This document shows positions 18,693 to 60,549 of a DNA stretch of 64,000 bases, in pieces. The notes under the pieces are model-generated. The model did no database searches and had not been told where the DNA came from. It was given only the letters and a program-made list of their open reading frames with translations. A program made the translations under genes and the position numbers. How positions within the stretch are numbered: position 1 is the stretch's first letter; each line of letters opens with the position of its first letter. Source of the DNA: Pecten maximus (lineage: Eukaryota); the NCBI RefSeq assembly GCF_902652985.1, contig NC_047017.1, forward strand, positions 31,620,001 to 31,684,000, given 5' to 3'.

Positions 18693-21600
18693 GTTGCTGA
18701 ATCAAGGACAGCTTTAGATACAAAATCTCCAAAGAAATATGCCCATGTCCTTGTACGACTCAAGAGAATACAGGTAAGACAATTTTATTGTTTATTTCAT
18801 ATAATTTCATTTTATTGTATCTAAAACATATTCTTACGAGACTAAAAGTAGCTCATGAATCAATTGATTGTATTTAAAGTCTTTTAACCAGACTAAATTA
18901 AAGTAGATGGATATTAAGTATTTCAAATTAATTACATAATTTGAGTTCGTAAATGTGGCATATCTGACAACTTTCCATTAATGTAGAATACAGCAAAAGG
19001 AGTTCTTGTGAGATTCCTTTCACATCTTTGTAAAGAAGGATACTGCAATAATAAGATATATGTTCCCATATCATTTTTGGTAAAAAATAGGCATACATGT
19101 ATACCCGGTATATACAATGTATGTATGTATTGTGAGTCCTTTTTAAAAAAAAATTGCCTGAAAAAGGCTGGTTGGACACTCCAACATGATCTATGCATGG
19201 TCTAATCAATGATACTAATGAGCAAAATGGGTTGTCATTTATTTGGTATTGTTTGTGTACACGAGGTTGTAAACCCTAAATGCCTACACAATGAAAAATA
19301 TTACATGCTAGATTCTGACAATGGATTGGCAACATATGATATGTTACCATTACAAGTCAATTTTGTTTGACTGATCTCTTTGGATAAAAGACTACAACAA
19401 AAACTGGTACTAGATCAATATGTTGGTCATAAAATAATATACAGTTAAAATATATAGCAAGTTTCTGGTTTCCCAGAAACCTACTCTAAACCACATGTCT
19501 AAACCTGAATCTTGCTTTATCCTTCAACTTCATACCTAAGGTTATTTGTTAATCCTGTCATTTAGATAGTAATAGAACCAAATGCAACCAGAGTGATTGA
19601 AATGTACAGGCACTTAACAGGACAAATGGCATGGGCTGGGATTGGACTTGGAAAAACATTCGTTGTTGATGATATCCTGGTTTTGTGTCCAAAGAAAGTG
19701 TTTTTGAAACATAAACCAAACTTCATTCCAAATTTTAGTATAAAAATTCTTAATACATGTACTTGATTGCATTAATCAACCCGACAGCTGTCAATCTCAT
19801 CTATATTCTTCCTTAGATGTTCCTTACAATCGCCTCTATCTAATTAAGAAAATCATGACAGTGCCAACAACAAAGGCCTGTTCAGTAAAAGCTCATTGCG
19901 TCAAGTGGGGTCATCTTGGCCTCCATTGGGTTGAAAAAGTGGGGTCATGAATTCAATGGAGGGACTATAGATTTCATTGCTAGTGACTGGGTATTTTTAG
20001 CCCACTTTCAATGGTGGGCAATTCAAATCGCCCTGCATCCGTGGTCCGTCTGTCCAATCGTCCGTCCCTCCATAAACAATTCTTGTTATCACTATTTCTC
20101 AGAAAGTCCTGAAGGGATCTTTCTCAATTTCCATATGTAAGTTTACCTTGGTACCTAGTTATGCATATTGCAATTTGGGACCAATCGGAAAACAACATGG
20201 CCGACAGGCAGCCATCTTAGATTTTGACAATTAAAGTTTGTTATCGCTATTTCTCAGAAACAAGGAATCTTTCTCAAATTTCATAGATATGTAAGTTCCT
20301 CTTGGTCCCTTGGTGTGCATATTGCATTTTGGGACAGATTGGAAAACAACATGGCTGACAGGTAGCCATCTTGTATTTTGACTATTGCAGATCGTCCTGC
20401 TATATTGCACTATATCAAGTTATTAAATGTTTTGAAAGAAGAATGAAGAAGGAAAAAGAATAGAAAATATCTGTCTTTCATTTGACTGATATAGATGATT
20501 CGATGGTGGGCGCCAAGATCCCTCAGGGATCTCTAATGCATTCTTCTTGGTTTTAATACCATTTATTGTTGCTACAAAATAGGATTTCATATTTCTGGAT
20601 GAAACAGCTCGGTGCTTTGATATCTTTTCTATCAGCATATCAACTTCATGTTTTAAACAGTACTGAGTTATTATCTTAAATTACATATTTTTCTGGTCAA
20701 ATGTCACCCAACAATATGATGAAAAATAGTTATTTGATGTACCATTAAAGTCTACTGCCAACAGTGCTAATGTACAGTTCAATGCATCTCCCCTTGTTGT
20801 GTGAGAAGTCAGGAACGTGTACCATTAAGTCTACTGCCAACAGTGCTAATGTACAGTATCATGTCAAGTTTCTGTGTTGGCTGTTGCTTTCAGCTTTGGC
20901 TGCTGGTTAATGGATGTCTATTGATGATAAAATCAATACTGTGAAAAGGTTAGAATTCACATAAGACAACTGTGACCATCTTCTTGCCAGCCTTTCTAAG
21001 TACAGTGTATACAAAATTAACTCTTGGCTAGCAAAGATGAATTTACCAGTGACTAATGTATTCAAAATAGATTGAACTAAGATCTATGTTTGTATTCCTG
21101 ATAATGATTCTAAGTCAAACTAATTACAAGATCTTTGATCTTTGTAAGAAAAAAGTGAAAATATTTATGTAAGTATACACCAACTAAAGCTCCAATAGAC
21201 CTGACAAGCCGTTCTTGTAATTCATAGTAAAAATATGATCAAGTTTAACTATACTTTACTATAGTGAACTCCCATGGATTAGACTTAGCATACTTTACCT
21301 ATATATAATACTATTGAATATTTCCACACAATACAATAGGGATTAATAACAGGGATAGCAGAACCCCTTTTATTGTGACTTTGTATTGATGTACTGGCTT
21401 TTAATTCTGAACTGCTGGTTACGATAACACAGTCATAATAGCAGGGAGAATTGCCTTACCCTGCTTCCTGTCTACATGTACCACACTGTTATGGAAATAA
21501 ATTTTACCGTGGGGGAGATTTTAGTTTTGGTCTGAGTAGACTTTTATTTCATTTGAATTCATTGGTGTTTTAATATTTTATAAGGTATAGGTTTCCATGT

Positions 21601-29007: not shown

Positions 29008-29040
<33 letters not shown>

Positions 29041-32000
29041 CTAAGGGGTTGGGCCGAGTCAAAATGCTTTACTATGGTTTCTGGCATAGCAAGTTGAGTG
29101 ATGCCCTCTGAGCCCCTTCTTTTCTATTCTTACTTGTGAATGGATTCCCCTATCGCTTTTGTAACTCATTTGAGGAAGTTTTCCGCATGTTACAGCAAGA
29201 GGAGGAGAGACAGGCTGAGGTGGATCATGAGAACAAGATACTTCTACAGAAGATGACCCAAATCATGAAGAGCAGACCAGAGATAGACAATTGGAATGAG
29301 TACGAGCCCAAGAGGTGAGTAGTGATACTGAAATATTTAGCTGTGAATATTTACCTGTGAAAGGTGTACATATTTAGGCTATGAAAGGTGTACATATTTA
29401 CCTGTGAATATTTACCTGTGAAAGCTGTACCTATAGAACACATTCATGGTTCAAACTGTACACCAAGAATAAAACCCAATCACATAGCATAAATATAAAG
29501 ATTCATGGTAAAACATTTTTTTGTTAATTTCTTATTTGCATTAACTACCTTAATTCAATTGAATATTTATTTCTCTCCCATCTTATATTTCAACTTTTTA
29601 CAAATATATTGGATATATATGCTGATTATACTATGTATGGTGCATTCACCAGAAAATGTTATTTATTATAGATTTGTTTTCACATCAACATGATATATGA
29701 CCACTCTAATAAAATTATCATTTATTTCTCATTATGCTATATGGTTTACATCAGTCAGTCAAACTCAGCGAGCTATGTAAAAGTACAATACATGTAGTAA
29801 AAATAACCATCAGTACATTAGTTATGATTGGAAACGGTCATTTTATTAAACAACATAAATATAATCATAATGCATGTGATAAGATCCCGCCTTAAAAAGG
29901 ACTCATTTTATTTGATTTGCATAAACAAATAAAAATCTATATTAAACATAACTATTGTAGGTGAAGGGACAAAAACAACAGCAAACACCAAATACATGTA
30001 AAAAATGTAAAGGATACTCAAATTACTAGAAAAACTTGAGACGCTAAGGGATGGTGGTGGGTAAATCAATATTTAAATGGTGCCATACCTTTTGGTATGA
30101 GAAAAAATTCAAAGTGAGTGACGCTTCAGCGGGTCACATGATTATGTACCACTATGCCATATCAGAATTTGTTTTGCCACATAACTCAGAAATTAAAACT
30201 CTGCGTCAAAAGGATATAAACCTGAAGAAAAAAATGTATCAACATAAATGCAATTGAAGTACCTTCCGTATTAAATTGTTATATTTTAATTTGTTTACAC
30301 TACATGTACCTAAAAGTTGATGGTTTAGAATAGTGTCTGTGACAGGTTTTCATGTGTAGGTAATATGTTGGAATCTTGAGAACACGGCAGATTGTCATGA
30401 AAATCTGAAAAATTTGTTTGTCATCAATGTCACTATTACTTCTCTGATTATGACTACTAAGTAATACACATCTTATGACCATCCATAGGTTTGGATACAT
30501 TGCTCATGTTTGATGAAGCATATTGTCATGACTATTACTTATTATTTGGTATTTGACAAGCCTTTATTGTGTTGTAGTTTAAATTACACCAGCCGAGAAA
30601 AGGTGTTGCGGGAGATACAGATGCAGAATATTGGTATTGCCCGACGATTGGACCGTGCTAAGCCTGTCTACAAAAATGACGAATTAGTGAGTACTTGCGA
30701 GTATTTGAATCATGAAAAGTAGTTTCCAGGCAGGATGTTTTATTTAGTCCAATTGAAAAGGCCATACGTAATTATATTTAAGTCCCGTCTTAACCAGACC
30801 CTGACAGTGACACCATAAATAATCTTAAAATTGTCAGTTATTGGTGACCTTAAATTAATGAAGATTATAGGAAAGACATAATAATACCCTATCATAAAGC
30901 AATTGATGTTATAGCCCTGAAATATTGAATGTGCCTGAAATTTATTGAGTATACCTAGAGATTTACAAAAACAATCAATATCACACTGAAAAAAAATATA
31001 CATACACATATACTCAGTGAATTTACAACATGATCGATGAGACATGGCAATGAAAAGTTAAACATTATCTAAATTTGTTACATATGATACTTGGTCCCAT
31101 ACTTATAAATTTATTGCAGCTTGTGCTTTCCTGTTGATTTATGACCTATAGTCTTTGAGGAGAAAGTTAATGTACATGTATGAATTATCTATTACAGACG
31201 CACACACAATGTGTATGGGTATGGCAATCATTAGGGTATTGTAATCATCTCTAGTGCTAGCCCATTTATCAGCTCAATTAGTGTTGTCATGGTTCATTAC
31301 AAATAATTAGCCGTGTAATTGAGGAATCCTACATGCTCTCGTATTGACTATATACTGGTTGGAGTGACACTCTACAGACAAGTAAATATTAAACTGTCCA
31401 TTGAACACACACTGTAGACCTTCATCAACACAGAATCCATGTTTACTCTCTATTGACATGCAAAACCTACCATTGGCAATTAAATTCCATTTACCCTAGG
31501 GTTCATCTCACAGAGATATATTGATGGTGCTGATATCGAACCTGGCCCAGATCGGATGTTTACTAATCTGATCCCCTGATGATCATGAAATGGTCGCTTC
31601 TTTACAAGATTGACATGTGCTGGCAATCATTTTATAGGCCTAGTTAATGAAATTAAAAAATTAAAAAGTTATTTGACAAATGCTGAAGCATGAATTATTA
31701 TTGATTGATCAGCTGATATTGTATTGTTGAATGGCGAATATTAGTTAATTGAAGCATGATTTCCTAAGGTGGATGTGATTTGATTTTATGTCAACAGTGT
31801 GTTTATATGAAACTGAAATCCAGTTGTATAATTGTTGATCGAATATTATAGATGGAAACTTGCATTCATTATGTAATAACTTGTATTGAATCAAGGGTAA
31901 TTTGTCTTCCTGTAATAAGAAGGGGGTTCTTACCGCCTGGAACCCTCTCACACACACACACCCCAATCTGTCTATGGTGATAGATTGTGGACTTGAAAAC

Positions 32001-32965
32001 AATCAAATTTTACCCAACCATGATATACTTGTCATTTCCTTGATTATTTGACTCCTGATTTGATGTCAAAACTGCTAGTGTCATGTCTGAGACTGTATTT
32101 AGTCATACTTACCATTTAGAGAAGCATTTATTGACATTTGTAATGTAGTACCTGGCCTAATTGTGTGTTGACTTAGTATCCATGGTTTGTTAATAAGAAA
32201 CTAAATGTCCTAAACTCACAGCATCAGTGCAATATAAGCCTCATAATATGAACCTAAAAATGGAAAGACTGAGAGATAAATATTTTTACAACATAACCAA
32301 CATTCTGACCAAAGAAAAAGCTTATTGGAGCTTTATTTTCTACACTACCTATCACTGGAACTTAATGCTTAAATCCTTTTTTTTGGCATGGATTGACCTA
32401 GGAAGGGTAATGTGTCATATGTAGGTCACTCTAACCTACATTTTGACCTACATAAAGAAAAAGTTTGCATTCTACATTGAAGTTCCACATGGACTAACTG
32501 TAACAGATTTTACATAGGTAAATACAGGACCAGTTTTATAAGGACCCGTTTTATATACCCCAGAGTTTTGGAGTTCCACATGGACTTCTGTAACAGATTA
32601 TACATAGTCATAGGTAAATACAGCACCTGTTTTAGTGGATACTTTGGATGGATGGGTAGATTAAAACCAAGACTTAAAGGATTTTAGATTTTTATTCAGG
32701 AAGTACATACCTAGGTATCAAAATTCTTTTTGAAGTTGTAATGTGTAGGTTACATGAAAACTGATTTCTTGTTTGTTTGTTTTTTTGTTTTTTTTAACAA
32801 AAGCTGTAAGGAAGTTAATTGGTATGTAAATCATACATTCTTAACTTTATGATTTTCTAGGAAAATGAATACCAGCAAAAGAGATACCTGCAGGCTTTGT
32901 GGGCTGAAAATGCCAAAGAGTTTGGCCAGGTTACCCCAAGACATCTGAAGTATCGCCAGCTTAAG
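18693..32965 (+). CDS. CFAP97/KIAA1430-domain (CFAP97D1/D2, hemingway-like) ciliary/flagellar protein exons; start exon not identified
   Basis: Exons 18693-18773 (VAESRTALDTKSPKKYAHVLVRLKRIQ), 29196-29314 (QEEERQAEVDHENKILLQKMTQIMKSRPEIDNWNEYEPK), 30578-30686 (SLNYTSREKVLREIQMQNIGIARRLDRAKPVYKNDEL), 32861-32965 (ENEYQQKRYLQALW..). All are GT-AG and phase-consistent. The pattern D.K.P..Y.H..LK..Q.EEER...I..EN..LL.KM..IM...DN.N.Y..KSLN...R..EL..I..EN..I..RL....P.Y is typical of the CFAP97D family. Confidence 0.85.
19994..20534 (+). mobile_element. Short HINE/pearl-type element (155-bp core family)
   Basis: 5' tttttagcccac..gtgggc, degenerate (gtcc)n, about 2 core repeats, 3' tggtgggcgccaagatccctcagggatctc hairpin; same family as 23442-27194. 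Confidence 0.85.
23442..27194 (+). mobile_element. Tandem pair of HINE/pearl-type elements carrying a 155-bp satellite (about 7 plus about 15 units)
   Basis: Near-identical 5' ends tttttagcccaccatcatcagatggtgggct plus (gtcc)n at 23442 and 24613; 155-bp repeats (ggaaaacaacatggccgacaggcagccatcttggattttgacaattg..); single 3' end tggtgggcgccaagatccctctgggatctcttgtt. Confidence 0.9.
27195..28751 (+). mobile_element. HINE-type element of a second family with about 8 central repeats of about 157 bp
   Basis: 5' ttagctcacctgg..ccggtgagct, (gtcc)n, repeats containing aatttggtcagaaacatccttggggg, 3' caggtgagcgatacaggccccatgggcttcttgtt. Confidence 0.9.
28752..29122 (+). mobile_element. Degenerate short HINE-type element
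   Basis: 5' ttagctcctgtgacttgaagggccaagtgagct, internal poly-G, decayed 3' end. Confidence 0.6.
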
Positions 32966-33034
32966 GTAAGACAACCTGTGTACAGAATACGATTTACTGG
33001 GTATACACTACGGGTATTAGTATTTGCAGGGGGG

Positions 33035-33495: not shown

Positions 33496-36400
33496 TCATT
33501 CAGACCAGAAGCCAACACACTAGTAAGTACCCTGAGGATTCACACTGTGGCCTAATCATCACTGTATGTGTCTGTAAACTTGTTGTTTGAAAGTCATTCA
33601 TGATAATTATTTGTACGAATATATAAGTTTGTGATTGCTGTGAAGTCAATTTGATGGAGTGTGTTACCAATGATACAGCACTGTTTGATGGAGTGTGTTA
33701 CCAATGATATGTCACTGTTTGAATGTTTACTACAGGATGAGACAACATTTATGATTGGTTACAATCCTAACTATTCAAGTCATGCTTATGTCCAAGGCCC
33801 CAGGATCATGAAACAGTCTGAGATTTGTGTGTGAACTCAATTTAACCAATTCCAACTATAATTATTTTATTGAAAAGCCTTAAAATTTGGTCCAGATTGA
33901 AGTAAACAGGTTTATATTTTACATTTTTAGATTGAAATCTGTAGAGTTTACCTGTAAGTCACTTGAGTTCAGAATCAGTAGATTGCTTAATGATCCAGGA
34001 TTAAAGCAGAGGAATTTTCATTGGAGTAAATATATGCCTCTGATTCTGGTAAAGTGTAAAAATAATTACCATCTGATTCTGTGAAATGAGTATAAAGTAT
34101 TGCCAAGTATGTGTTATCAATAATTGAATATTGGATGATTACTTACCTTAAGATTGGTCTTGTTTTTTGTTCAGTATGTAGTGCCTTTCCTAGATTATGA
34201 GCAGGTAAACAACAACTTATATAGAGGTAGATAGTGTAATGTATATAATTACAACAGTTAAACAACATTATATTTATATAAAATAAATGTACATGTAGCC
34301 AGATAGTTTACACTGTAGCTATAGTCTTAATTAGAACAGGTTCTACTAGTATCAATAGTCAATACCAATCTATTGTAATACAAAATGTTAGTGTATGATA
34401 TCCAAGATTTGAAAAAAAATAATCCATGATATTAACTTTTTATTTTATTTTTGTCAAGCAAGATGTCTTTGGAAATTGTTTTTCATTAAAATTTGTCCAA
34501 TTAACAAAAAATCATTTAAAATAGAATTGAATGATTATTCTGTAGTTTACATTTTATGATCTAGATAATGTATGACACTTATGTATCAGGTCAGCTTTTA
34601 ATCTTTGCTTTTACAAGGTTTTCACATATGGAACACATATCTTGTGTAAAACCAAAAAGGAATCAAGTTGAGTCTATAATTCCTTGATACAAGATACTAG
34701 TGAGAGGATGTTGTGGTATTCACTAAAACATTTACTTCTAGGGGCTTCCCCTACTGAACTATGAGACACAGAGTTATAGTATTTGTCCTTTACTTAATGG
34801 ATTGGATGACTTTGATGAAGTTTAATTAATTAAATGACAATAGTATTTGTCCGTTAATTTACTAGGTTGGGTGACTTAAAAAATGATTTGTTAAATGATA
34901 ATATTCAGCATTGCAGACCTTTTGGATGAAATTTATTGCCAGAGCCTGTAGTCTGTACGTGTAACTACATGTAGTGCATATTGTAGCTTAGAGAAAGCAT
35001 GCCAATATAACATCAGTATCTAGCCTGGCCAAAAGTATATCAGTAAAGATATATTAAGTCCTGAGTCCAGTATGAGAATGCTGACCAACATTTTCTGTGT
35101 GGCTGTGTTGCCTTCAGAAGGCTACCTCCCATCAGGTACAGATTTGTTATCTATTTCAGTTGTCATATTATGTTGAAAACTTACTCTCATTCGAGTTTAG
35201 TATTTGGTGAAATTCTTAAACGTTAATGCAGCTTCTGTGATCTAATTGGGTAATGATTTCTGGGCAGCAATCTGATTGGCTGATGATTTCTGAGCATTCT
35301 GATTGGCTGATGATTTCTGAGCATTAATTTGATTGGCTGATGATTTCCGGAAAATTCTTTTGGAGGATTTTGTTCAGAATTTCTATATGGTTTATCCATA
35401 CTACACATATAATGCCATTTTATTAATTTGTCATTTTATGGTAAATTGTTTTCAGGACTCTTTCCATCTTACTAGTGCAGACAACAGACAAAGTCTGGTT
35501 TAAAATGAAAAACTGTATACATGTGGTCATTATATTGATGTTTAGTAAAATCATTTCAACAAAGGTTTTATTATATAATAATAAGGAGAGACGGATTGTC
35601 GTTGGTGTCACTATACTATGTGTATGATATTTATATGGTAATGAGGAGAGATATATTGTTTCCTGTGGTTGTACCACATGGTATTTATATTGTTAATTTT
35701 ATAATAACACAGATGCTTATTTTCTCTCGCTTTTGCAGTAGAATTCCAACAAATGCTACTTCACGACCTTCTGGTCCAGATATTGAGGGATATTTAAAGT
35801 TTTAACGTTGTTGATAGAGTTGTGTTGATAATGCGATGATAACACTGATACCAAGAAATTTGTTGTTGATTCCAGAAACAACACGAAGGTGAAGAACCAC
35901 AAGATGAGTATGACGAGGAAGACGAACCTTTTCATCGTCACAATGTCATAGCCAAAAACACGACCTTGGGCTTACCCCCTATTGTAAGTGACATATACTA
36001 CTTCTCTCACTTATAAACGTTAAACACATACCTGTATACATTTGTTGTCTTCCTTCTATATGCTTTAAGTCGACCTGGACAGATTATTACACAACTGGGG
36101 TCTGACATAATGATCCTCTAGGTAATATGTCGGCCCAACAGGTGATAGATCCATGATCACCACGACTACACCATTAACCTTCAGTGTAGATCTTACTTTA
36201 TGTTAGTAGAGAGGATTTCATGATACATAAAACTATGCTCAAATATTTTACCATCTCAAGTTGTTAAATGAATAATCGCCTTGTTACTGTATGCATTCAG
36301 CAGACCACTTGTTATGTGATTATTGGTTCTAAGTATCTATGCATACCAGTCTTAATTAATCCAATCACAATATCAATAACATGCCATTCTCATTTCATTC

Positions 36401-37038
36401 TACAGAGATTATGCTTGTCATTTTTAACAAACTTTAATCTATAGGACAGTTTTCAACAAGGAGGCTGTTCATGTACAGTCAGAAGCTCTTCATTTTTAGT
36501 CAACATAGCATTTTGTCCAAATGGTACCTGCATATTGAAACAAAAAAAAAGGAGTTATATATAGTTTAAAGTTTATTCACTGTATCATATGCTTGAATGA
36601 ATAGACTGAATAGTTTAAAGTTTATTCACTGTATCATATGCTTGAATGAATAGACTGAATCATATTTTTCAAATGTATGGGCTAAAAACAGGTTTTTTTT
36701 ACTAAATTGTTTTGAAGCAAGTCTTACATTTAAGTATGAGAGTGTTTCTGATTAAAAAGTACTAGATCCACTGCAGTCACCACGGTCAAAGCTCTGTTGA
36801 CTAAATGTACATTAAATACAAAAATATCAGAATATCCTCAGTTTTTGTCTTTAATTATGAATCACTCATACAATAAATTAACATTAATTACGTAAAAGGT
36901 AAGTACCAGGTTGTTGAGATTAATTAGGTGATATTCACTTCAGTGAACTTTCAGAAGATGGTGTATGACTAACAGCACTGGTCTGTATGTTTTGGTGTTG
37001 TTCAATTTCAGGAGAATGGAAAATCAAATAGCAAGCAG
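33496..37038 (+). CDS. Phase-0 linker exons and microexons of the CFAP97-domain gene
   Basis: 33496-33522 (SFRPEANTL, TAG..GTAAGT), 35118-35135 (KATSHQ, weak donor), 35876-35983 (KQHEGEEPQDEYDEEDEPF..LGLPPI, GTAAGT), 37012-37038 (ENGKSNSKQ). All lengths are multiples of 3 with no stops. Confidence 0.6.
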
Positions 37039-40554: not shown

Positions 40555-41097
40555 AACATAAGATATATGAAGGACACTGGAGGATCAGGTTCAGACCCGT
40601 ATAAACAAGGCAAAGGACAAGACAGACTGCCACACCTCGACAAAAAGGTCAGTAAAGGTTCTAGGCCTGTCAAATCTGAACACACAGTTGATGTCAATTC
40701 AACCAATGATTCAACAAGGAAAATTGAATCAGCCAAAACTGTTGAATCAGCTAAGAATATTACATTAGGATCAACAACCTCAACTAAAAAGACCCGTCAA
40801 CCTAGAAAAATGGATTCCTCCAAAACTGTTAATTCAACTAAAACAGTTGAATCAACCACTTCTACCAAAAAGGCTGATTCAGTAAAGAAGTTTGAATCAG
40901 CAAAAACAAATGATGATTCTTCAACTAAAAAAGTTGATTCATCAGGTAAAAATCTTGAATCTGCTAAAACAATCAGGTCATTGGTACGAGCTGATTCACC
41001 TACTAAAACAATTACGTCGACCAAAAGGGAGAATTCACCTGTAAAAAGGCCATATTCTTTAAGTTCTGCCAAGAGGGATGATTCTTTCTTTGATTAA
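40555..41097 (+). CDS. Terminal coding exon with a Lys/Ser/Thr-rich low-complexity tail (short isoform end)
   Basis: Acceptor tcttcctgttgcag in phase 0, 180-codon open frame to TAA at 41097, AATAAA at 41656. Confidence 0.7.
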   Translation, partial: NIRYMKDTGGSGSDPYKQGKGQDRLPHLDKKVSKGSRPVKSEHTVDVNSTNDSTRKIESAKTVESAKNITLGSTTSTKKTRQPRKMDSSKTVNSTKTVESTTSTKKADSVKKFESAKTNDDSSTKKVDSSGKNLESAKTIRSLVRADSPTKTITSTKRENSPVKRPYSLSSAKRDDSFFD

Positions 41098-43553: not shown

Positions 43554-43621
43554 CTACCATGGTAACGGTAACATTTTGTTATAGTTGCCTTGGTTACCTC
43601 CATGGTAACTGTCATGGTAAC
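43554..43621. promoter_or_regulatory. Cluster of RFX X-box-like motifs
   Basis: ctaccatggtaac, gttgccttggttac, ctccatggtaac and gtcatggtaac within about 70 bp. Confidence 0.4.
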
Positions 43622-45105
43622 CAGATATTCATTATGATGGTGAATGGTGATGTTAGAACCCAAAACCTATCATTGTAAAAAAGCCAACAAAAAAAAATTT
43701 TTTTGTTTCTTCTTAATTTAAACTGCTGCTTGATAATTTCGGCTGTCAGTTGATTTTGAAAGTAAAATGACCCTTCATCTAAATCCAATATACATGTAGT
43801 ACTAACTGGCCAGGAGGAACAGTCATGTTATCACAATGACGGTGGTTGACTTGATTTGTAGTACATATTTGATGATGGTATAATTTTTCCAATTAAGTGA
43901 ATTTGTGATAATTAAGATGTAAAATATTTACAGATTATGTTTAAGACTGTACTGTGATAGCAAGTAAATAACATGAATAAGGTGTTTTTTTATATTTCTC
44001 TGTATTACATCTATATTTTTGTATTACTTTTTGTAGACATGTATGATTATATCCTAATACCGGTAGTACGTCTGTTAGATGGTTTCACATCATATCAGGG
44101 TTGTGTAATTTTCACTTGCCTAACAAGCATGCTTTATGTTATGGTACTGAACACTTGAGTATTTATGGTATGAGGGACAGTGGGATAACACTATAATTGT
44201 ACACCCCTGCTTTATCAAACTCACTTAACCTGACATTTGTTTGATGTAATCTACTATTACTGATGGAGATTTGTTTAACATTCATAGACTCGCTCACAAC
44301 AGAAAACTAACTCTAGGTCTTGTAAGTAATAATTGTAAGATACAACTCATATCTCTCCATTGTTTTATGTTGTGTCATTCTAATGTATCTAACAAATATA
44401 CTTCATATATACTCCCTTCCTGTGTAGATCAAACTTTCTCTGATTTCTCTGTCTTATCTTCTATCAAAAGACAAATACAATTGTGTTTCTACATTGTGCC
44501 TGATGACATTAGTCCACCCGAGTCTGAATTCTCAAGCACAATTGCATAATCATGCAATTATGCTGTTAAAAAAGTATTTTCAAACAAAATTGTTTCATTT
44601 GTAGACTATGATGCAAGATAGGGTTGAGTTTATGAGAGAAGGTTTGATTTCATAGTTTGGTGAATGTACTAACAAATTGCTACATCTCAACCCAGTCATC
44701 TTTTCACTGTATTGTGCTTGACTCAGAGTTAAATTACCTGAAGACATATTAACATACCAAGACAGAAAAGCCTTATTCCAATGGAAAACTCTTTTGATTG
44801 TTTATTTGAAAAATTGGGTAATAACACATTTGGATACAAATCATAGTGTTGTTAAACATGTTTTATTATTAGTCTGGGTATAAATTTGGCGTGAAAGGCT
44901 ATAAGTTCCTCCTATGGTGGCAGCCAAATTAGAGCGTTACAAAATTTACCTTATAAATGTTCTTTTTTATTTTACCATCTTTTTATCAAGGGATTTTGTA
45001 ACAGATCAGTGTCAGCTTTTGTTTTTAAATTTCTGTTTGTATTTGTCATGGTTTTCCTCCTTACTGATCTGTTCTTTCTACCTGTGTTCTGTCCCCTCTT
45101 GTCAG

Positions 45106-45171
45106 CAGAAGGATGACTCTCTGAATGTGTATCGTGGCACTCACACAGTCCGGGTAATGGGCTCAGACCAG
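45106..45171 (+). CDS. 66-nt phase-0 exon (QKDDSLNVYRGTHTVRVMGSDQ)
   Basis: Long polypyrimidine tract, NAGNAG acceptor (cagcag), donor CAG|GTAAAC. Confidence 0.6.
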
Positions 45172-47570: not shown

Positions 47571-48012
47571 TAATTCTCATTGAATTATCACCTCTAAATA
47601 TGGGCCTATTAAGTTTTATGTCATTTAATGCCTAAATCTTACCTAATTACTAACTTGTGGGGAGATGTGTTTCTTCTTCAAAAGTTTGTAATATATTATT
47701 TTGAATGTTGAAGAAGAAAATAAGGATATCTTAAGATCTTAAAATCTATTTTCTGGTGAATTCTATGCTTTTAGATATCTGCTTTAGCATTAAGAAATAA
47801 ACAGTATTTAAGGTGTCTGATTGCATGATCTTGATTGCATGCTGTTGATGACAAACAGTTAATCTATAGTCCATGAAGTGATGTACATATATATCAGTTA
47901 AATATATTTGTTTATTACAATGAAAGCATGATTTGACCAGGCGTGGATCACCACCGCTCCTATCGTGATTTTTGTACCTTCAGTAGTTTGAACCATCAAT
48001 GAATGTCATCAT

Positions 48013-49280: not shown

Positions 49281-49727
49281 TCAAGCTTTGAAACTCACTT
49301 TTTATATTAGTATGAACTTGAATAATTTATATTTGCTATTCGTTTCAGCATTAAATTTTGAAATTGCGTGTGATCATAGCAATGACTTGAACACAGAACA
49401 TTTTAGTGTTACATGTATAATTAATAGATGGATCATCTTTATGATGAGAGCAACATATTTTTCATGCAGAAATAAAAAAATTAAGGGAGATGTTCTGTGT
49501 TTGCCTTGTTACAGCTAGAAAGTTGTTGAAAATAGAATGTTTTGTTGATAGCAAGTAAAATTCTGGTGAAGTGATGCATGATATTAATGAATATGCAAAT
49601 ATTTATCTGACAAGGTCACTCAGCATTTTCTGTTTGGAATATATGAGATACAGGGCTCCTCTCAGTGTAACTAATTTGTCCTTACATTTCAATTTGATCT
49701 TTTAATGCTGCTGGGATGTCCTTGTAG

Positions 49728-51299
49728 CCGGAATCAAAAGGTCTTCGATCAAATCCATGTAATGAGCAGTTGGTTGGGTTTGATGTTTTGCCTCCTATCA
49801 TGTCTAACAGTGTCCGTATACAGATGTATATAGGAGTAGCCAAACATCAATCCAATCATCAGAATCATAGAAAAAAACTGCCAAAGCATAGAAATTTAGA
49901 TAGATCAAGGTATGGCAGGTTCCTTCATACTGATTCCACGAGGAGTGTGGTGAGTACTGACCCTGTGGGGAAGGTAGAAAGTTCTAAACCAGGCCCTGTG
50001 GGGAAGGCAGAAAATTCTAAACCAGGCCCTTTGTGGAAGGTAGAAAGTTCTAAACCTGACCCTGTGGGGAAGGTAGAAAATTCTAAACCTGGCCCTGTGG
50101 GGAAGGTAGAAAGTTCTAAACGAGGCCCTGTGGGGAAGGTAGAAAGTTCTAAACCAGGCCCTGTGGGGAAGGTAGAAAGTTCTAAACCTGGCCCTGTGGG
50201 GAAGGTAGAAAGTTCTAAACCTGGCCCTGTGGGGAAGGTAGAAAGTTCTAAACTTGACCCTGTGGGGAAGGTAGAAAGTTCTAAACCTGGCTCTGTGGGG
50301 GAGGTAGAAAGTTCTAAACCAGGCCCTGTGGGGAAGGAAGAAAGTTCTAAACCAGGCCCTGTGGGGAAGCTAGAAAATTCTAAACCAGGCTCTGTGGGGA
50401 AGGTAGAAAGCATTCAACCCTCTTCTGTAGGGAAGGCAGCGAGTACTCAACCTGGATCGTTGGGAAAGACAGAAAGTACTCGAACCAGCCGATTGGGAAA
50501 GGTAGAAAGTACTGAATCCGGCCCTGTTGGGAAGGTAGAAAGTACTCAACCTGTTCTGATAGGAAAGAAAAAGGACTTTATCCTCCGTACGAAAGGGAAG
50601 ACTGAAAACCATTATGTCACACCCACAGATCACAGCATCGAAACACAAATTGCCAAACTAAAACAGGTGAAGGATAATTGTTTAAACCATAACCCAGTTT
50701 TACCTGCCATAGGTTCTTATTTTTCAGTAGATTTACATAGAGATTCTTTACCTGTACAAATAGACTCAAAAGGTGAAAATGCAAATTTAACTGATGAGTA
50801 TGAAAGTACAAAAATCTTAGATGATGAAGTTAGTGGTTCAGTACACTTGTCTCAAGTAGTGACTGGTGAAGGAGATGACATGGGTAACAATAGACCTGGG
50901 AACTCAGCACTCTCCCTGGTGGGGAGTAGTGATGATGGGGAAGGGTTTACAATCGGGGTATCTATAAGGGGCATTGATGTAGATAGAAATGAATACACTC
51001 AAGTCCGGAGCAGTGATCAGAACTTTCCAGAACAGCTTCGGAAGGACGAAGAATCTTCAAAGATAGTCACAATCACAACAGATTTGTCTACTGCTCATAT
51101 GGACAGACAATACTCTTCTGGGGGACCCAAGAACTCTAGACAACCAATGAGAATGGATTCGGGTAATGATTACCCGCCAGTAAGCAACAACCTCAATCTG
51201 AAGAAAGGATATCGAAGCTCAGATAACAGCCTGTCCTCCTCTGTGGGGAAATTGTCGTCCCTGACAAGATCAGAGGGCAGTTTGGATGGCTCAGACAAG
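49728..51299 (+). CDS. 1572-nt exon encoding a disordered region with 11-aa GKVESSKPGPV repeats
   Basis: Acceptor ccttgtag in frame with ORF 49770-51389; about 18 copies of a 33-bp coding repeat (about 49960-50550); candidate GC donor AAG|GCAAGC at 51299/51300, after which the ORF becomes intron-like and hydrophobic. Confidence 0.75.
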
Positions 51300-53222: not shown

Positions 53223-56200
53223 TACCATGATGACTCGAGATCAGAAACAACAGAGGGTGGACGGACAAACCGGTCAGATCGCTCTAGTATCCAGGGTGAC
53301 AAAAAGGACCCCCAGCAGGCACAGATGGATAGTGATGCTAAACAACTGTTCAACGCCTCCAAGCTCATAGGCAGAGGCAAGTTTGTTGAGGTCTCCTATA
53401 CCTGATGTGAAAATTATAATGTGAATGTTTTAAAACTGAGTCATCTAAGGACCAGCTTAAACACAGGTTTCCATTTCTAAATCTCTAACCTTAAATAGTT
53501 TTCCACATAGCTTTAGACAGCATGCTCTTTTGTTTCATTTTTGGCTCTGTCTATTGAGGTGTCAAAATTAATCTATCATTTCATTAACATTACATGGGTG
53601 TGGTACATAGAAAGGAAATCAAGTGGCATTGTTAGTCTGCCTTCAGTAGTCACACTATATTTAGGGTGTTAATGAAGAGAGTTATCTCCCTGTAACCATT
53701 GTTTGTTCTTACTTCAGTTCACCCTGAAGACATCATTATCAGGACCTGTGTGAGACGCAACCAGAAACAGAGAATGAAGACTAAAGCCAGATTTGAGGAA
53801 CTCTATGAGCTGGTGAGGAAGAAACTGTTTATATTTTACTAATCAGTATATTATGTGTATCATGAGATATTAACTAAACTGACTGTTGTAACTATTGACT
53901 CATTATCTCTGGTTTAGGAAACAATTATATACAAGATTGATCATTTATCCACAGGAGCTGATTCCAGAGTTGAAGTCAGGGCTTGGAGCCAGCTGGCACC
54001 TTTTGATAGATGCTCTCCTGGACGACCGCACCACTTCCTCAGCCAGGGCTATGCATGATGCTTTAGAGGTATGCATCTGTTGGATGATACTTCATCTTAA
54101 TTTGTACGCAAATTATGTCAAACCTAGCCTGTATAACAAAAACCTGTCTATTAAGTCCACCTGATTTGGTGCCCAATGTAGCACAAGTAATGGCATATGA
54201 CTCTATAATATAAAAAACACCTGCCTAGAGGTCAATTTTCTTTGCTCCTTTGACAGACCTTTATTGACAGATGTACATCTATTTTCTGAGATTCTATGTT
54301 TGTATGTAAGTACAGGTCTGTGTGAAGTCATCATTCCTTTCTGAGTTTTAGTCTGTAGTATAATACTAAGTACAATGACTTCTTGCAGGAAGGGAACTAC
54401 AATACAGCCGTAGAGATTTTATGTCTGAGTACTCCGCAGTCCCTGGCCACATTGAACGACCTCTACAACAAAGGTGACAGATATTACCTATTTTAAAGAC
54501 TGTATACTTTGTCTATTATATGTCATGCATGTAATATTTTGGTGTATATGTCACTAGTGTAATATACCCTTGAGTGTTTTTCATTTGCTGCACAACAGTC
54601 AGAAATTGATTGTGATGTCATAATAATGGACAATGGTGTGAAGTCATGAATTTTACATTTGCACAAAAAAATGATGGCCTCCATTTGATTTTGCCTTCCA
54701 CATTTTCACTTTAAAACCTGTCAAAATGCAAGGTTTCTAAGTTAATATGTGATTAAAAGCATCTGATTTTTTTGTTTTCATTTCATATGAGGTTTTATTG
54801 TTGTTCATTAAAGACAAAAGGAATATTACCCCATGACTTACCATTCAAGATATTCACAGGGTAAAATAATTAGAAAGGTTAAAATACTGTAGAATTTAAC
54901 AATTATAGGAAGCATTGCTTCATCACATTAAATAATTGGTGTATCAACTGCTGTGGTCAAAGTTCAAGGCCACGAAACCGCTACGGCCAAAAAAGATTTT
55001 ATTTTCTTCTATAGGATACTTGACAGCATTACAGTTATCTCCCCTACACCAATATTTTACTTAAGAAATAATTAACAATGATTCGTGTATTATTGCAGGA
55101 TATACAACGAGGACGAGGATACTTTGCAATTAAATTAATAACGAAGGCCGCAGGCCTGAGTTATTAATTAAAATTGCAAAATATCCGAGTCCGAGTTGTA
55201 TATCCTGTAACAATACACGAGTCAAAGTTGATTATTTCTATTCTACCATGTACTGTTCAGTTCTGAGATCGACCTCTTTCTAATAGAAAAACAGCAAAGA
55301 AACCCCGGGAAAACCTTGTAATTTATTTGTTGAGTATTGCATTATTTGTTGATGAAATATACAGGCAATACAGTACTACGATCAAGAGCATCTATCATAT
55401 GGAATTGATTTTGAAAATTAAAAAAAAAAGATAAAAAAAAGAAAAAAGTGGGGGCCTCCGTAGGATTCGAACTCGCGTCGTGATAAAAATATATTGAAAG
55501 ACTAACCCATTAGCCCACTCGGCTATAGTAACCTTTTATGAAACGGTTGAATATTAGATATTTAAAATTGTAACAGCCGTGACTCACGAGCGTGTACTAT
55601 TGGCACGAGCGTGGGTTATTGGAAAATAATACACATGGTTTTTAACCAATCAAAACTGGCGTTACATAGCAAACATGGTAGAATAGTCAATCATGCACCT
55701 ATATTTTCATCTTTTCATCAGTTTCATGTGTATAAGCAAGTTTGATTTCTGTAGGGGACACCAGTTTAGATTTTCGAAGTTTTGTGAATTTATAACTGTA
55801 CTTATCAGGTAGTACTTCACATGTCTCAATCTGTTTTATTTATTACGTATAACCTCATATAATAAAATGTTGATAATAGCATTATGTTATTAGGTTTTAC
55901 ATCAATGTTGTATGTTGTAGACTATGCTGTGAGTTTGGAAGGAGACATCACTGATAAGACAGAGGCTCCAGAACAGACACTACTACTTGCCCTACAGAAG
56001 GTAAGGCAAGCCTGTCGTGTTTATTCTGGACTTTTCCCAAAAGACTCACAAATATGTATACCCAGTACCAATCAGAAATAACGACAACTAGTTCTATTTT
56101 TTATATTATTTATTCCCTATGGTGATACACCACAGAAAACTGTATAAAAACTCTCCCTATTAGCAGTAAATATCTGAGTGAGGTCAGGTTCTGTGATGAA

Positions 56201-59200
56201 ATATTCCTCGTTTTCCCTGGTAATAAACAAAATAAATCTGTATAATTAGAACACTGCCTTTCAGTAGTAAATAAACCTCATATCAGGACAGTTAAAGGGT
56301 GTCTCCTGGGACATATCATCTGTTCTTTATTCCACATAGATCCATCTAGATCCATCATAAAAATTCATCAGACCTAAACATGGCTATAAAATGAGTCTTT
56401 ATGTCCTTGCCAGGGCCGTGATGAGTCTGTAAAGGTAGAGGAGAAGCAGGCTGAGAAGGATGCAGATTCTCTGTACGAGGTAAGCTTCTAGAGTTTAGAA
56501 TTGGAAAGATATAGTATGGTAATTGCCATCAGATGGCTTCAGTTCGCTGACTTACTTTTTGTTTTGACTTTTTTGAATTTTAAAGAAATTAGATGTAAAT
56601 TCAATAAATAGAAAAGCTTACTGTTCATTATTTGAAAAACAAAAACCAGCAAATTTATCAAGAGATGTATAACAGACAACACTGCACCTAAAATCTTGAT
56701 TGAATATTTTGATTTTGCAGTCTGGTGATGGTCGTTGGAGTAGTGACACAGGCCCTTTCATTAAGATGGTTTGTGCCCGTAATTTTGCCCATATCCGAGT
56801 TGTCTTGAACCTGTATAGAGTTCTGACAGGGGGCAAGGATGTGACAGAGGATATAAAGAATGAATGTTCCCGACAGTATGCGGACTGTCTGGTCACCATG
56901 GGTATGTTGATGTTTCACTAACCAGTCTAGGTCATGTCCCGAGAGCAATATCTGTGTGTCACAAATAATAATAATATGTACTTCAGACAGGGGGTGAACC
57001 ATCTGATTAAAAAAAAAAAAATTGAACTGTCAAATCCAGAACTCTTGTTTTGAAAGCAGATTATTGAACAAGTCAAACTCAATAACTCTCTAAATTTCCT
57101 AAATTCCCTGTGAACCAACAATGGTAACCTTTTTAACAAAATAGGCCATATGTTCAATGTTGGCAAACAAATTTTCCTTCTAGGTTTTCCTAGGAAAACA
57201 GGTGTACATCATGTTTTTTGATAAGCCATGTATTACCATTGGGTCACTCTTACCTTAGTTTAGGCTTTGACTTTGGTCAAAGTATAAACAATTAACAAAT
57301 TAATATGCATTTCCTGGAAATATCTCAGCAACTTCCATGCTAAGACATCAAATTTGTTATGGAGGTACTTATAAGGAAGCTATTTGATATATTCATGACT
57401 TTGGTAATACAGTGACCTCTATTTGACAATTGACATTGACCTCAGTAAATAATGAAGTATAGGTTTCTAGGACATACATGTACTTTGGTTTCATGTAAAG
57501 TATAGACTTAATGGACTTGGGAAAATATCATCACTTCTGTTTGACCTTTGACATCCAATGCCTAAATATATTTTCCCATGTCATATAGGTTTATATATGT
57601 CTTTAGGCTTGATATGTCCTACAACAGAGTCAAGAAATATGTTTGGTATCAAAAAGAATAATGTGATCTGTTTGATCTTTGGCTTTTTACAAATTACTAA
57701 AATACAAGTTTACATAGCATATCTCACTAAATTGTTATATGGAATTCCATCTTGGTATAAGGCACTTTATCACAAACCAAAATGTGAACCTTGAAACACA
57801 GGTTCAGTCGACATATCTTGCCCACCTGTTGGGAAATCACACTTAGTAGTCAGGCGTTACAGATTAAGAGAATATGAGTTGAATGTTTGGTGCTATTACA
57901 TTTTCTAAACACGATTTAAGACTTTGTAGCATTTCTATTTAATTAGCTATGGTTCTACTGAGTATAAATTAATCTTACACAGCCATATGTATCTAAATCA
58001 AGAGCTTTTCCAGTATGCAAGGATTAGACTGAGCATAGACAATTAATGCTGGGAAACGTTATTTTTGGATGTAAATCAGTAGATTTTTGGTACGATAATT
58101 TGAGGATGTGATCTCTGTCATACCCAGTAGTAATTCAATTGTCTGGCAGTGTAGATGAAGGGCTGATTGAATTGGAATACCTAATGCTTGTAGAAATGCT
58201 GTGATATTGTAAAGACTCTCTACAAAACATGCAACATGTCCATAGTAATAGATTTCCCACAGGAGATCATGCCAGAGTCAACTTTCCTTCTATAATTATG
58301 TATTCCATTCTGAACTTGTTTTTTCCCCTTGATGCTGATATAAATGCAATACAAATGAACTGACATCAGGAGATTTAAGTGTGTTTGGTAATGCAATGTG
58401 AAATCTCATTATCCTCGTACCTGATAAATAATAGCTGTTTTGATGTGCTGGTTTCTGCTTCTGACGTTTCCCACGTGTTTAGAAAGGAAACATAATACTA
58501 CCGTTGTCCCTTTGAATAGCCCCAAATTGTCATTTTGAATTTTGACGTATGAATTTTTTAAATGCTTTTCTAAGGAACTCCTGAAGAGATATTCTTGAAA
58601 TATAAGAGGCATAGTTAGTATAGGTTTTTGTTGTACATACCATATGTTGAAGATTGATATTTAACTTGTATTTTTCTATTACAGTGAATTGTGTGAGAGG
58701 GACTGATACTAATATTTATATTTTTAGGTCACCTGAGACAAAGTCTCATTCATGGGTAAAGGTCAGGGGGGGTTGGCAAAAAGGGTTTTATCGACTAAAA
58801 TTTTAGAAATCTTCTCAACTCCCAGATATGGTAGATTCAAATGCTCTTCACAAACAAAATTGTGAATTTCATGATCCTGGGGTCTCACATTTGCCCCTTG
58901 GGAGGAGGTAAACTTTACTGTAGTTTATTTTAAAAAAAATCTTCTTTTTTTTACTATATCATTTATTTCATTTCTATTGCACTACATTCTAACTTGGTTA
59001 ACATTATAATCATGGGATGACAGTTTGATGGTATGCACATGTTGCCCCTGACTGACCCCCAAGGACTGATGGTTGGGGCCAAGAAGGGTCAAATTAGCTT
59101 CATATACATCATAGACCACAGAAGGTAGAATCAAATACTCTTCATAGATGGAAGGGTCTTAAGGTGCTATACAAAAATTGTGAATTTCATAACCCTGGGA

Positions 59201-60549
59201 GGAGAAAAACTTTACTATAGTTTATATAAGGAAATCACATTTTTGACTATCATTTGTTTCATTTCTATTGGAATTAGCACTTTTGGAAGGCAGTTTGCTG
59301 ATATGCAATTATTAGGCCCAAGTGATCCCCAGGGGGTGATGGATGGGGTAAAAAAGGTCAAATGTACAGAAATACCAGGTATATACATTCTGTATATCAG
59401 AAACTTAGGTGACCATTAAGGCCCATGGGCCTCTTGTTCTTGCAGTGAATTGTGTGAGAGGGACTGACACTTATTTATATTTCTCTTTATTACAGTGAAT
59501 TGTGTGAGAGGGACTGATACTTATTTATATTTCTCTTTATTTCAGTGAATTGTGTGAGAGGAGCTGATACTTATTTATATTTCTCTTTATTACAGTGAAT
59601 TGTGTGAGAGGAGCTGATACTTATTTATATTTCTCTTTATTACAGTGAATTGTGTGAGAGGAGCTGATACTTAATTATATTTCTCTTTATTACAGTGAAT
59701 TGTGTGAGAGGGACTGATACTTATTTATATTTCTCTTTATTACAGTGAATTGTGTGAGAGGAGCTGATACTTATTTATATTTCTCTTTATTACAGTGAAT
59801 TGTGTGAGAGGAGCTGATACTTAATTATATTTCTCTTTATTACAGTGAATTGTGTGAGAGGGACTGATACTTATTTATATTTCTCTTTATTACAGTGAAT
59901 TGTGTGAGAGGAGCTGATACTTATTTATATTTCTCTTTATTACAGTGAATTGTGTGAGAGGGACTGATACTTATTTATATTTCTCTTTATTACAGTGAAT
60001 TGTGTGAGAGGAGCTGATACTTATTTATATTTCTCTTTATTACAGTGAATTGTGTGAGAGGAGCTGATACTTATTTATATTTCTCTTTATTTCAGTGAAT
60101 TGTGTGAGAGGAGCTGATACTTATTTATATTTCTCTTTATTACAGTGAATTGTGTGAGAGGAGCTGATACTTAATTATATTTCTCTTTATTTCAGTGAAT
60201 TGTGTGAGAGGGACTGACACTTATTTATATTTCTCTTTATTACAGTGAATTGTGTGAGAGGAGCTGATACTAATTTATATTTCTCTTTATTACAGTGAAT
60301 TGTGTGAGAGGAGCTGATACTTAATTATATTTCTCTTCATTTCAGTGAATTGTGTGAGAGGGACTGACACTTATTTATATTTCTCTTTATTACAGTGAAT
60401 TGTGTTAGAGGAGCTGATACTTATTTATATTTCTCTTTATTACAGTGAATTGTGTGAGAGGAGCTGATACTTATTTTGCTGATAAGATTTTCAAGAACAT
60501 GTCTGCCAAAGACCAAGACTTTGTAAACATGTTGGTAGCTCGGTCTGAG
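53223..60549 (+). CDS. Divergent annexin core (repeats 1-4; last exon(s) not found in this window)
   Basis: Exons 53223-53376 (..DSDAKQLFNASKLIGR, GC donor), 53718-53812 (95 nt, EDIIIRTCVRRNQKQRMKTKARFEELY), 53955-54068 (114 nt, ELIPELKSGLG..ARAMHDAL), 54389-54473 (VEILCLSTPQSL..Y), 55921-56000 (80 nt, SLEGDITDKT..LLLAL), 56414-56479 (GRDES..AEKDADSLYE), 56721-56901 (GDGRWSSD..FI..RNFAHIRVV..Y..DVTEDIKNE), 60446-60549 (VNCVR..YFADKIFKNM..LVARSE). Motifs and the 95/114/80-nt exon sizes match the conserved annexin gene structure. Confidence 0.9.
55069..55686. mobile_element. Non-autonomous element with a long terminal hairpin and asymmetric inverted repeats
   Basis: Inverted arms of about 75 bp (55069-55142 and 55159-55235) around gaaggccgcaggcctga; inverted repeat ctattctaccatgt (55238) and acatggtagaatag (55673). 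Confidence 0.7.
55451..55533 (-). pseudogene. tRNA-like / Pol III cassette inside the hairpin element
   Basis: A-box TAGCCGAGTGG, B-box GAGTTCGAATCC with T-arm, downstream T-run; acceptor and anticodon stems are degenerate. Confidence 0.5.
58721..59438 (+). mobile_element. HINE-type element inserted in the first unit of the 50-bp acceptor array
   Basis: 5' tttttaggtcacctgag, 3' aggtgaccattaaggcccatgggcctcttgtt; flanked by array sequence on both sides. Confidence 0.85.
59442..60475 (+). repeat. 50-bp minisatellite (21 units) that is a tandem amplification of an annexin 3' splice site
   Basis: Unit ttatttatatttctctttattacag|tgaattgtgtgagaggagctgatac; the last unit is the real start of exon 60446-60549; an orphan unit lies at about 58670-58720. 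Confidence 0.97.

Follow-up and report, generated by a model that had tools for sequence, protein, structure and literature searches.

The window analysed here is a 64,000-nucleotide stretch of the genome of the scallop Pecten maximus (NCBI RefSeq assembly GCF_902652985.1, contig NC_047017.1, positions 31,620,001 to 31,684,000 of the forward strand), and the positions given below are those of the window. Exons that encode a CFAP97 domain (Pfam PF13879) are followed in it, on the same strand, by exons that encode annexin repeats (PF00191). The original prediction, drawn from positions 18693-60549 alone, had assigned both sets to one gene, and this is what RefSeq annotates: LOC117323910, named 'annexin A6-like', holds both sets, and its isoforms X4-X6 carry both domains. 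The gene spans more than 90 kb; its ATG, at 10381, lies upstream of that range, and its last matched exon falls at the window-equivalent position 101079, more than 37 kb beyond the window end (64000). We are highly confident that this is a single gene in which two alternative N-terminal modules are placed on one common annexin body, and that the combination of head and annexin is ancestral to bivalves and gastropods and is no accident of read-through.

The window sequence was searched exon by exon; the whole-protein queries were database proteins, and the query for the CFAP97 head was residues 1-240 of protein P0135. Isoforms X4-X6 (990 aa for X4, 981 aa for X5 and X6) run through the head and linker exons of Table 1 in order, with the two 27-nt microexons as cassettes, as far as 40555-40647, and 40647 is then joined directly to 53223 and the exons beyond it; the exon near 44.3 kb, 45106-45171 and the repeat exon 49728-51299 are skipped. 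The X5 and X6 proteins (P0135 and P0136) map exactly on the window, exon by exon, with AG/GT borders. Isoforms X1-X3 are without the head, and all of them begin at the ATG at 49800. Proteins that hold the repeat exon are 1059-1241 aa long; the shortest, isoform X3 (1059 aa), ends within the second annexin tetrad, past the window, and represents an alternative 3' end. Against the full protein library, the repeat exon gave one protein at 100% identity (residues 25-524), which is isoform X2, XP_033735328.1.

It had also been claimed that all exons from 32861 to 53223 join in phase 0 without stops, and this was confirmed: every listed exon between these positions, including 45106-45171 and the linking exon ended at either 40647 or 40983, has AG...GT (or GC) at its borders, a length divisible by 3, and no stop. 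After 53223 the exons are no longer all in phase 0 (53223-53376 has 154 nt). Phase-0 compatibility alone is weak evidence, and an in-phase join of 37038 to 45106 would arise by chance with an estimated probability of roughly 0.1-0.15. The path that had been drawn through these exons is not the annotated one. It was expected to skip 40555-41097 and to pass through 45106-45171 and the repeat exon; isoforms X4-X6 instead use the first 93 nt of 40555-41097 and go straight from there to 53223, and neither RefSeq nor the RNA contigs nor any of 59 homologous proteins shows the path from 37038 through 45106 to 49728. All of the exons listed in the prediction are present in RefSeq models with the exception of 45106-45171, and 40555-41097 is used there only as 40555-40647.

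The same domain combination is conserved in molluscs. A profile made from seven fusion proteins (alignment A1) retrieved 33 proteins, all molluscan, and 29 of the 33 have both domains. A check of domain architectures, which the prediction had proposed, found PF13879 and PF00191 joined in 20 named species of bivalves and gastropods: Pecten, Argopecten, Mizuhopecten and Ylistrum; three Mytilus; four oysters including Magallana gigas; Tegillarca, the unionid Potamilus, Ruditapes, Mercenaria and Mya; three Haliotis; and Aplysia. No fusion protein from outside the molluscs appeared in the profile search, which was word-limited. Furthermore, three fusion proteins of 934-991 aa (P0144, P0175 and P0179) lie on Logan contigs of 3.4-3.8 kb. 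Since the Pecten gene exceeds 90 kb, contigs of this size must be intron-free, and we take them to be derived from mRNA, a judgement made from the length of contig versus open reading frame alone. Several entries have non-Gnomon names or accessions (OWF41696.1, CHS0354_017534, KUTeg_013675 and 'ANX13-like protein'), which we take to mean that they come from other annotation pipelines; OWF41696.1 (970 aa), which we take from its non-XP GenBank accession to be a submitter annotation, belongs to the same 90% cluster as the scallop fusion proteins. The sequence itself is not new, as the gene models are public and both Pfam domains are precomputed on them. The names under which the fusion is deposited are 'annexin A6-like', 'titin homolog' and 'uncharacterized', and we found no paper that describes the combination of a CFAP97 domain with an annexin, nor a study of mollusc annexins that covers the fusion.

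The junction between the two parts is also conserved among scallops. Identity of the linking exon 40555-40647 to the proteins of Argopecten, Mizuhopecten and Ylistrum is 77-84%, and the junction peptide ...LPxLDxK/YxDDxRSE... is common to the Pecten, Argopecten and Mizuhopecten proteins. The product of the extension 40648-40983 shows 74.6% identity over 112 aa to Ylistrum protein P0138, and the similarity ends exactly at 40983, where Pecten has a candidate donor (TTG/GTACGA at 40983/40984). In the Ylistrum balloti model, of 1593 aa, the donor matching Pecten 40983 is joined directly to the repeat exon; the 24 codons with which this exon opens, ahead of the Pecten start codon, can be aligned as protein with this model. 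Thus, the chain of CFAP97 domain, repeat exon and annexin core that had been predicted occurs in one model, from Ylistrum, and in none of the annotated Pecten isoforms; judged from sequence, a long form with head, Ser/Thr/Lys-rich region, repeat and annexin is a possible candidate in Pecten. The remaining part of the extension, 40984-41097, is a possible end of a short isoform without annexin, which would have 390 aa. Poly(A) signals are present at 41649 and 41656, about 550 nt 3' of the TAA at 41097.

Transcripts with the repeat exon have a 5' exon of their own. The repeat exon is present in seven public runs, and four of them were aligned to positions 49283-55282. Contigs of RNA runs X1 and X2 omit introns in this segment and are therefore derived from RNA; their joints connect 51299 to 53223, 53376 to 53718, 53812 to 53955 and 54068 to 54389. 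Colinearity of the contigs with the window begins exactly at 49728, and there is no coverage at 49283-49682. In the contig of run X2, the 30 unaligned letters before 49728 have a single match in the window, at 44292-44321, which a GTAAGT donor follows directly; the contig of run X1 likewise has 30 unaligned letters before 49728. Thus, the 5' exon of transcripts with the repeat exon lies at about 44.3 kb, and 45106-45171 is skipped in them, in agreement with the start of isoforms X1-X3 at the ATG at 49800. The 44.3-kb exon has no ATG in the frame of the repeat exon, and a stop is found at 44247-44249; a TATAAT lies at 44192-44197, upstream of the end of the exon. Because it feeds the same annexin exons, we regard it as an alternative first exon of one gene. 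A second start had been suspected near 43.6 kb, and the exon ending at 44321 bears this out, except that it belongs to the same gene and not to a second one; the ATG of MGSDQ in 45106-45171, put forward as the start codon, was not borne out, as the ATG used is that at 49800. Exon 45106-45171 is absent from all six RefSeq isoforms, is skipped in the RNA contig that joins 44321 to 49728, and has no similarity among the 59 homologous proteins. A possible internal acceptor at 44287 for the 44.3-kb exon would break the frame with the CFAP97 exons.

RNA runs X5 and X7, which are equal in size and possibly one data set filed twice, contain a 676-nt contig that covers 53221-53374 and 45 nt of the next exon, and none of its 477 upstream letters falls on 49283-53220. 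Besides the repeat exon, exon 53223 must therefore be joined to another upstream partner. Contigs of this kind cannot reveal transcript starts, and rare forms may escape them. In the same runs, a 2748-nt contig begins at 54258, in the intron before exon 54389-54473, which indicates intron retention or another internal start.

The first two introns after the repeat exon are consecutive GC-AG introns, with donors GCAAGC (51300) and GCAAGT (53377), both backed by RNA contig joints. An alternative donor of the repeat exon at 51311/51312 was rejected, as the joints fit the GC donor at 51299/51300. The repeat exon contains a 33-bp coding repeat in 18 copies and has no Pfam match. Stretches 37-40% identical to its PGPVGKVESSK-type part, some of them with stops, are found on a different chromosome of the scallop, at C1:55631742-55633082 (L004 and L005).

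Table 1. Features of LOC117323910 in the window and predicted regions of the fusion protein
Feature	Position	Strand	Basis
First coding exon of the CFAP97-head isoforms (MPGFHACNKLLKKYEEDKAYRIHKKK)	10381..10458	+	ATG 10381; X5/X6 mapping; GT donor
CFAP97-domain exon 2, phase 0-0	18693..18773	+	X5/X6 mapping
CFAP97-domain exon 3, 119 nt, ends in phase 2	29196..29314	+	PF13879 33.8 bits; 32.2 bits in scan of own genome
CFAP97-domain exon 4, 109 nt (SLNYTSREK...)	30578..30686	+	X5/X6 mapping
Exon 5, close of the conserved head of about 165 aa (ENEYQQKRYLQALW...PRHLKYRQLK)	32861..32965	+	Mapping; alignment A1
Cassette microexon, 27 nt (SFRPEANTL), in X4 and X6	33496..33522	+	Isoform mapping
Acidic linker exon (KQHEGEEPQDEYDEEDEP...LGLPPI)	35876..35983	+	Isoform mapping
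Cassette microexon, 27 nt (ENGKSNSKQ), in X4 and X5	37012..37038	+	Isoform mapping
Linking exon of the fusion isoforms, 93 nt; internal donor AAG/GTCAGT at 40647/40648, to 53223	40555..40647	+	Isoform mapping
Open extension of the linking exon, Ser/Thr/Lys-rich, to TAA stop; 40648-40983 conserved coding	40648..41097	+	Ylistrum similarity; sequence
Exon A, 3' end of the alternative 5' exon; donor CTT/GTAAGT; spliced to 49728	44292..44321	+	RNA contig, RNA run X2
Candidate exon of the original prediction (MGSDQ ATG); splice-like signals only	45106..45171	+	Sequence
Repeat exon, 524 codons (11-aa PGPVGKVESSK-type repeats); ATG 49800; GC donor at 51300	49728..51299	+	Isoforms X1-X3; RNA contigs
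First exon common to all isoforms (YHDDSRSE...), 154 nt; GC-AG intron follows	53223..53376	+	Mapping; RNA joints
Exons of the first, divergent tetrad: 53718-53812, 53955-54068, 54389-54473, 55921-56000, 56414-56479, 56721-56901	53718..56901	+	Mapping; RNA joints; PF00191
Last exon in the window; repeat 4 of tetrad 1 begins here	60446..60549	+	Mapping
Head, five helices, moderate confidence	residues 6-167		AlphaFold2 (AF2)
Linker, disordered; predicted local distance difference test (pLDDT) <35	residues 168-268		AF2
First annexin core, pLDDT 82-93	residues 270-580		AF2
Disordered region, low confidence	residues 585-632		AF2
Single long Lys/Glu-rich helix	residues 633-667		AF2
Second annexin core, pLDDT 80-93	residues 681-978		AF2

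The head was recognized as a member of the CFAP97 family in several ways. PF13879 matches exon 29196-29314 alone above its cut-off of 25.6 bits. In P0135 (residues 23-117) the match covers positions 1-99 of the 100 in the profile and scores 66.1 bits; the orthologues score 59-77 bits. The single exon stretches 10363-10500, 18654-18821, 30489-30719 and 32861-33043 gave no Pfam match, each being too short alone. In a phmmer search of the PDB, head residues 5-139 matched 8snb_4T (3.1e-23), 9v10_Aa (CFAP97D1, 2.5e-21) and 8otz_Z (CFAP97D1 of bovine sperm, 4.1e-19), followed by 9e2g (1.4e-7) and 9e78 (3.8e-7). The ESM Atlas gave no usable match. In X4-X6 and in every orthologue, the head forms one chain with the annexin body and is thus no free-standing small protein of 160-230 aa. 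Three more PF13879 loci are present in the scallop genome, at C14:20050711-20055932 (L007), C10:20427697-20428826 (L008) and C6:28829107-28829319 (L009). At the C14 locus (RLATIERDNRILLEKMSYVMRTQGRVDNRNNYEYK) there appears to be a canonical, free-standing gene of the CFAP97D type, and the match on C6 sits in a 447-aa open frame.

In the variable linker that follows the head, the motif (K)LP(P/K)(I/L) occurs twice (P0135 residues 195-200 and 233-238; alignment A1). L197, P198 and P235 of the linker are invariant from scallops to Aplysia in this alignment, which suggests that the motif may serve in docking.

The annexin part is an octad, that is, two tetrads with eight repeats in one chain. PF00191 matches two exons taken singly, at 53.7 kb and 56.7 kb, and for the whole protein the match reaches 1e-72 (237 bits with 7 stretches at E<=0.1 for P0133, and 240 bits with 4 stretches at E<=0.001 for P0135). 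A structural model built on 15 orthologues (alignment A2) had a mean pLDDT of 71, and its regions are given in Table 1. In Foldseek the top match was annexin VI (1m9i, 2.7e-27), which covers both cores, followed by the single annexins XII, III, II and V at template modelling (TM) scores of 0.85-0.89. The number of tetrads differs between molluscs: Mya has three, venerids have four, Haliotis has several, and Aplysia has at least 17 repeats. Canonical loops of the KGLGTDE type are retained in tetrad 2 of the Mytilus, Tegillarca and Potamilus orthologues. A second octad annexin of Pecten maximus, encoded outside the window (P0146, 'annexin A6-like', 1100 aa), has canonical KGxGTDE loops, six in number, and differs in its N-terminal region (PF13287); exchange of heads on octad annexins may thus be common to molluscs as a theme.

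Between the stop at 41097 and the repeat exon, three arrays (41819-43123, 27 bp x 48; 45971-47563, 57 bp x 28; 48013-49282, 53 bp x 24) yield long spurious open reading frames on both strands, for example a 464-aa 'HHLDNECF' frame on the minus strand. Satellites of 155 bp and 157 bp (23549-26957 and 27272-28544) occupy much of the 10-kb intron from 18773 to 29196, and a poly-G run of about 30 bases is found near 29014-29040. At 59443-60476 lies a 50-bp tandem array (20.7 copies, 95% matches), in each unit of which the acceptor of exon 60446-60549 and the opening bases of that exon recur; thus, about 20 look-alike acceptors precede the real one.

The arrangement of this single gene, of which we are highly confident, is as follows. 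A first promoter, upstream of the ATG at 10381, gives transcripts for a CFAP97D-like helical head of about 165 aa and a disordered linker of about 100 aa with two cassette microexons. The second 5' exon, ending at 44321, gives head-less transcripts that are translated from 49800 in the 524-codon repeat exon. Both classes of transcripts then continue into eight annexin repeats, in which a helical linker rich in Lys and Glu separates a first, divergent tetrad that has no Ca2+-loop motifs from a second, more canonical one. The product of the first class may be regarded as an annexin with a head of a cilia family, or as a CFAP97D-type protein with a membrane-binding tail.

One possible function of such a protein, which we propose tentatively and hold at somewhat below an even chance, is that of a tether between axoneme and membrane. 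Like sea urchin CFAP97 and mammalian CFAP97D1, the head would run along the outside of the A-tubule in axonemal doublets, and across the linker of about 100 residues the annexin array would extend to the inner leaflet of the membrane of the cilium or flagellum. The gap between axoneme and membrane is roughly 15-25 nm, and an extended chain of about 100 residues reaches up to about 35 nm. The fusion protein could thus be a periodic, possibly Ca2+-sensitive tether in sperm flagella, in gill and larval cilia, or in both, and the head-less repeat isoform might place the same annexin body elsewhere. What makes such a tether plausible is the position of the head's solved homologues on the outside of the doublet. 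Structure 8SNB is the 48-nm doublet of sea urchin sperm, in which chain 4T is 'CFAP97' of 231 aa (PMC10973386), and CFAP97D1 is counted with those microtubule-associated proteins that are external on the doublets of sperm (PMC11779644, PMC13406575). CFAP97D1 forms a module with EFCAB3 and TSSK6; TSSK6 lies outside the seam of the A-tubule, where the doublet meets the outer dense fibre, and the module is lost in Tssk6 knock-outs, in which the lumenal proteins (microtubule inner proteins, MIPs) stay (PMC13066092). Taken together, the gene architecture and the tether form a combined explanation that we regard as evenly balanced between right and wrong.

Several points weigh against this combined explanation. 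Most of the fusion models are Gnomon predictions and could share a systematic bias, which is countered by the existence of the non-Gnomon entries and of the contigs resembling cDNA. No Pecten RNA read across the junction of 40647 with 53223 was seen in the region that was aligned, 49283-55282. The head is a divergent paralogue, and the C14 locus (20.05 Mb) seems more similar to the sea urchin chain bound to the doublet; thus, binding at the same doublet site is not guaranteed. A type II Ca2+-binding loop is marked by GxGT with D/E about 38 residues further on, and no Pecten repeat has a canonical GxGT loop (tetrad 2 has GKYGT, GMGS and SMGV, and tetrad 1 has none), so Ca2+-dependent membrane binding may be weak or lost in scallops.

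The divergence of the head also bears on an alternative possibility, namely that the fusion is real and the head is not for doublets. The docking partner of the head could be a kinase or an EF-hand protein, in the way that CFAP97D1 works in one module with TSSK6 and EFCAB3 (PMC13066092), or the head could bind cytoplasmic or centriolar microtubules, and the protein would then be an annexin with a targeting head. Scallop P0146, an octad annexin with a different head, agrees with such a role. N-terminal heads of annexins commonly bind partners, and those of annexins A1 and A2 mediate partner binding with S100 proteins. On the other side, head residues 5-139 are homologous to doublet-bound chains (E 3e-23), and the Pfam family was described from proteins of cilia and flagella: hemingway is its cilia and flagella member (PMC3982993), and Cfap97d1 knock-out mice have defects of the axoneme and of motility (PMC7444823). 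We consider this explanation unlikely, yet worth keeping in mind.

Loss of the Ca2+ loops might alternatively mean that the fusion is axonemal and its annexin body no longer binds membranes, being instead a rigid scaffold or spacer on the doublet surface with decaying Ca2+ loops, an invertebrate counterpart of the linkers of accessory structures. Tetrad 1 is without GxGT loops in every orthologue inspected, tetrad 2 is partly degenerate in Pecten and oyster, and the site of mammalian CFAP97D1 faces the outer dense fibre and not bare membrane. However, canonical loops are kept in Mytilus, Tegillarca, Potamilus, Haliotis, Aplysia and the venerids, and some lineages have added canonical tetrads (17 Pfam repeats in Aplysia), which argues for selection on annexin function. 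Scallop sperm is moreover of the simple type, without outer dense fibres. A scaffold of this kind is improbable.

Two adjacent genes on the same strand, a CFAP97-like gene ending at the TAA at 41097 and an annexin gene from about 44.3 kb, with the fusions as read-through or prediction artefacts, were at first our favoured explanation in view of the stop and its poly(A) signals, the separate 5' exon spliced to 49728 and the head-less isoforms starting at 49800, but it is now very improbable, because RefSeq isoforms and orthologues carry both domains, because the fusion recurs in 20 named species, in non-Gnomon entries and on three short Logan contigs where an artefact would be confined to one annotation or species and have no conserved junction, because the linking exon and the junction peptide are conserved among scallops, and because, in the contig of RNA runs X5 and X7, exon 53223 has an upstream partner different from the repeat exon.

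Returning to the single gene with an axoneme-to-membrane tether as its product, a further step may be considered. Bridges between microtubules and membrane have been described in the cilia of scallop gill and of Tetrahymena (Dentler, Pratt and Stephens 1980, PMC2110547), and the protein with head and annexin may be a component of such bridges in molluscan cilia or sperm flagella. It would then recur every 16 nm on the outer doublets, a spacing expected because the sea urchin relative shows three chains in the 48-nm map (8SNB), and would act as a Ca2+-switchable membrane clamp with 2 to 5 tetrads tuned by lineage and, in scallops, with an additional head-less isoform. This is speculative, and we give it only a small chance of being correct. 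In the literature searched, we found no identification of the scallop gill bridges at the level of sequence. How the ciliary membrane is held to a beating axoneme along its shaft is poorly understood, and the fusion family is a concrete candidate for a bridge, as one end of the protein is a plausible anchor on the microtubule surface and the other end an array that would bind membrane. The locus is also a clean case of one annexin body with two alternative N-terminal modules from two first exons, in which the automated names hide the CFAP97 domain.

Compared with known systems, the head resembles CFAP97D1 and the sea urchin CFAP97 (8SNB chain 4T) in that residues 5-139 align with them (E 3e-23 to 4e-19) and PF13879 is present at full length. 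CFAP97D1 has 164 aa, close to the scallop head of about 165 aa, which is predicted to be a chain of helices. In contrast, these proteins are free, with 160-230 aa, whereas the scallop head is the N-terminus of a protein of 960-2100 aa and a divergent paralogue, whose binding to the doublet is putative. The annexin body shares with vertebrate annexin A6 (1AVC, 1M9I) two tetrads and a linker in one chain, with the best Foldseek matches over about 730 columns. It differs from annexin A6 in identity (26% to 1AVC), in a first tetrad without Ca2+ loops, in a long inter-tetrad linker that is disordered and then helical, in the 270-aa N-terminal head and linker, and in the three to five tetrads of other molluscs. 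Vertebrate annexin A6 arose by a separate tandem fusion, and orthology of the molluscan fusion to ANXA6 is unlikely. Single scallop tetrads match Hydra annexin XII/B12 at a TM score of 0.89 with 36% identity. As in annexins with functional heads of the A1, A2 and A11 type, a conserved core is combined with a variable N-terminal region that sets the partner or the location; unlike the S100-binding or Pro/Gly-rich tails of those annexins, the N-terminal region of the scallop fusion is a recognizable domain of a cilia and flagella family. The bridges of scallop and Tetrahymena cilia, finally, link outer doublets to the ciliary membrane, in scallop gill among others, as the fusion protein might do; they have been attributed to a dynein-like ATPase complex (PMC2110547), and a connection of the fusion to them is a hypothesis only, with no link in sequence.

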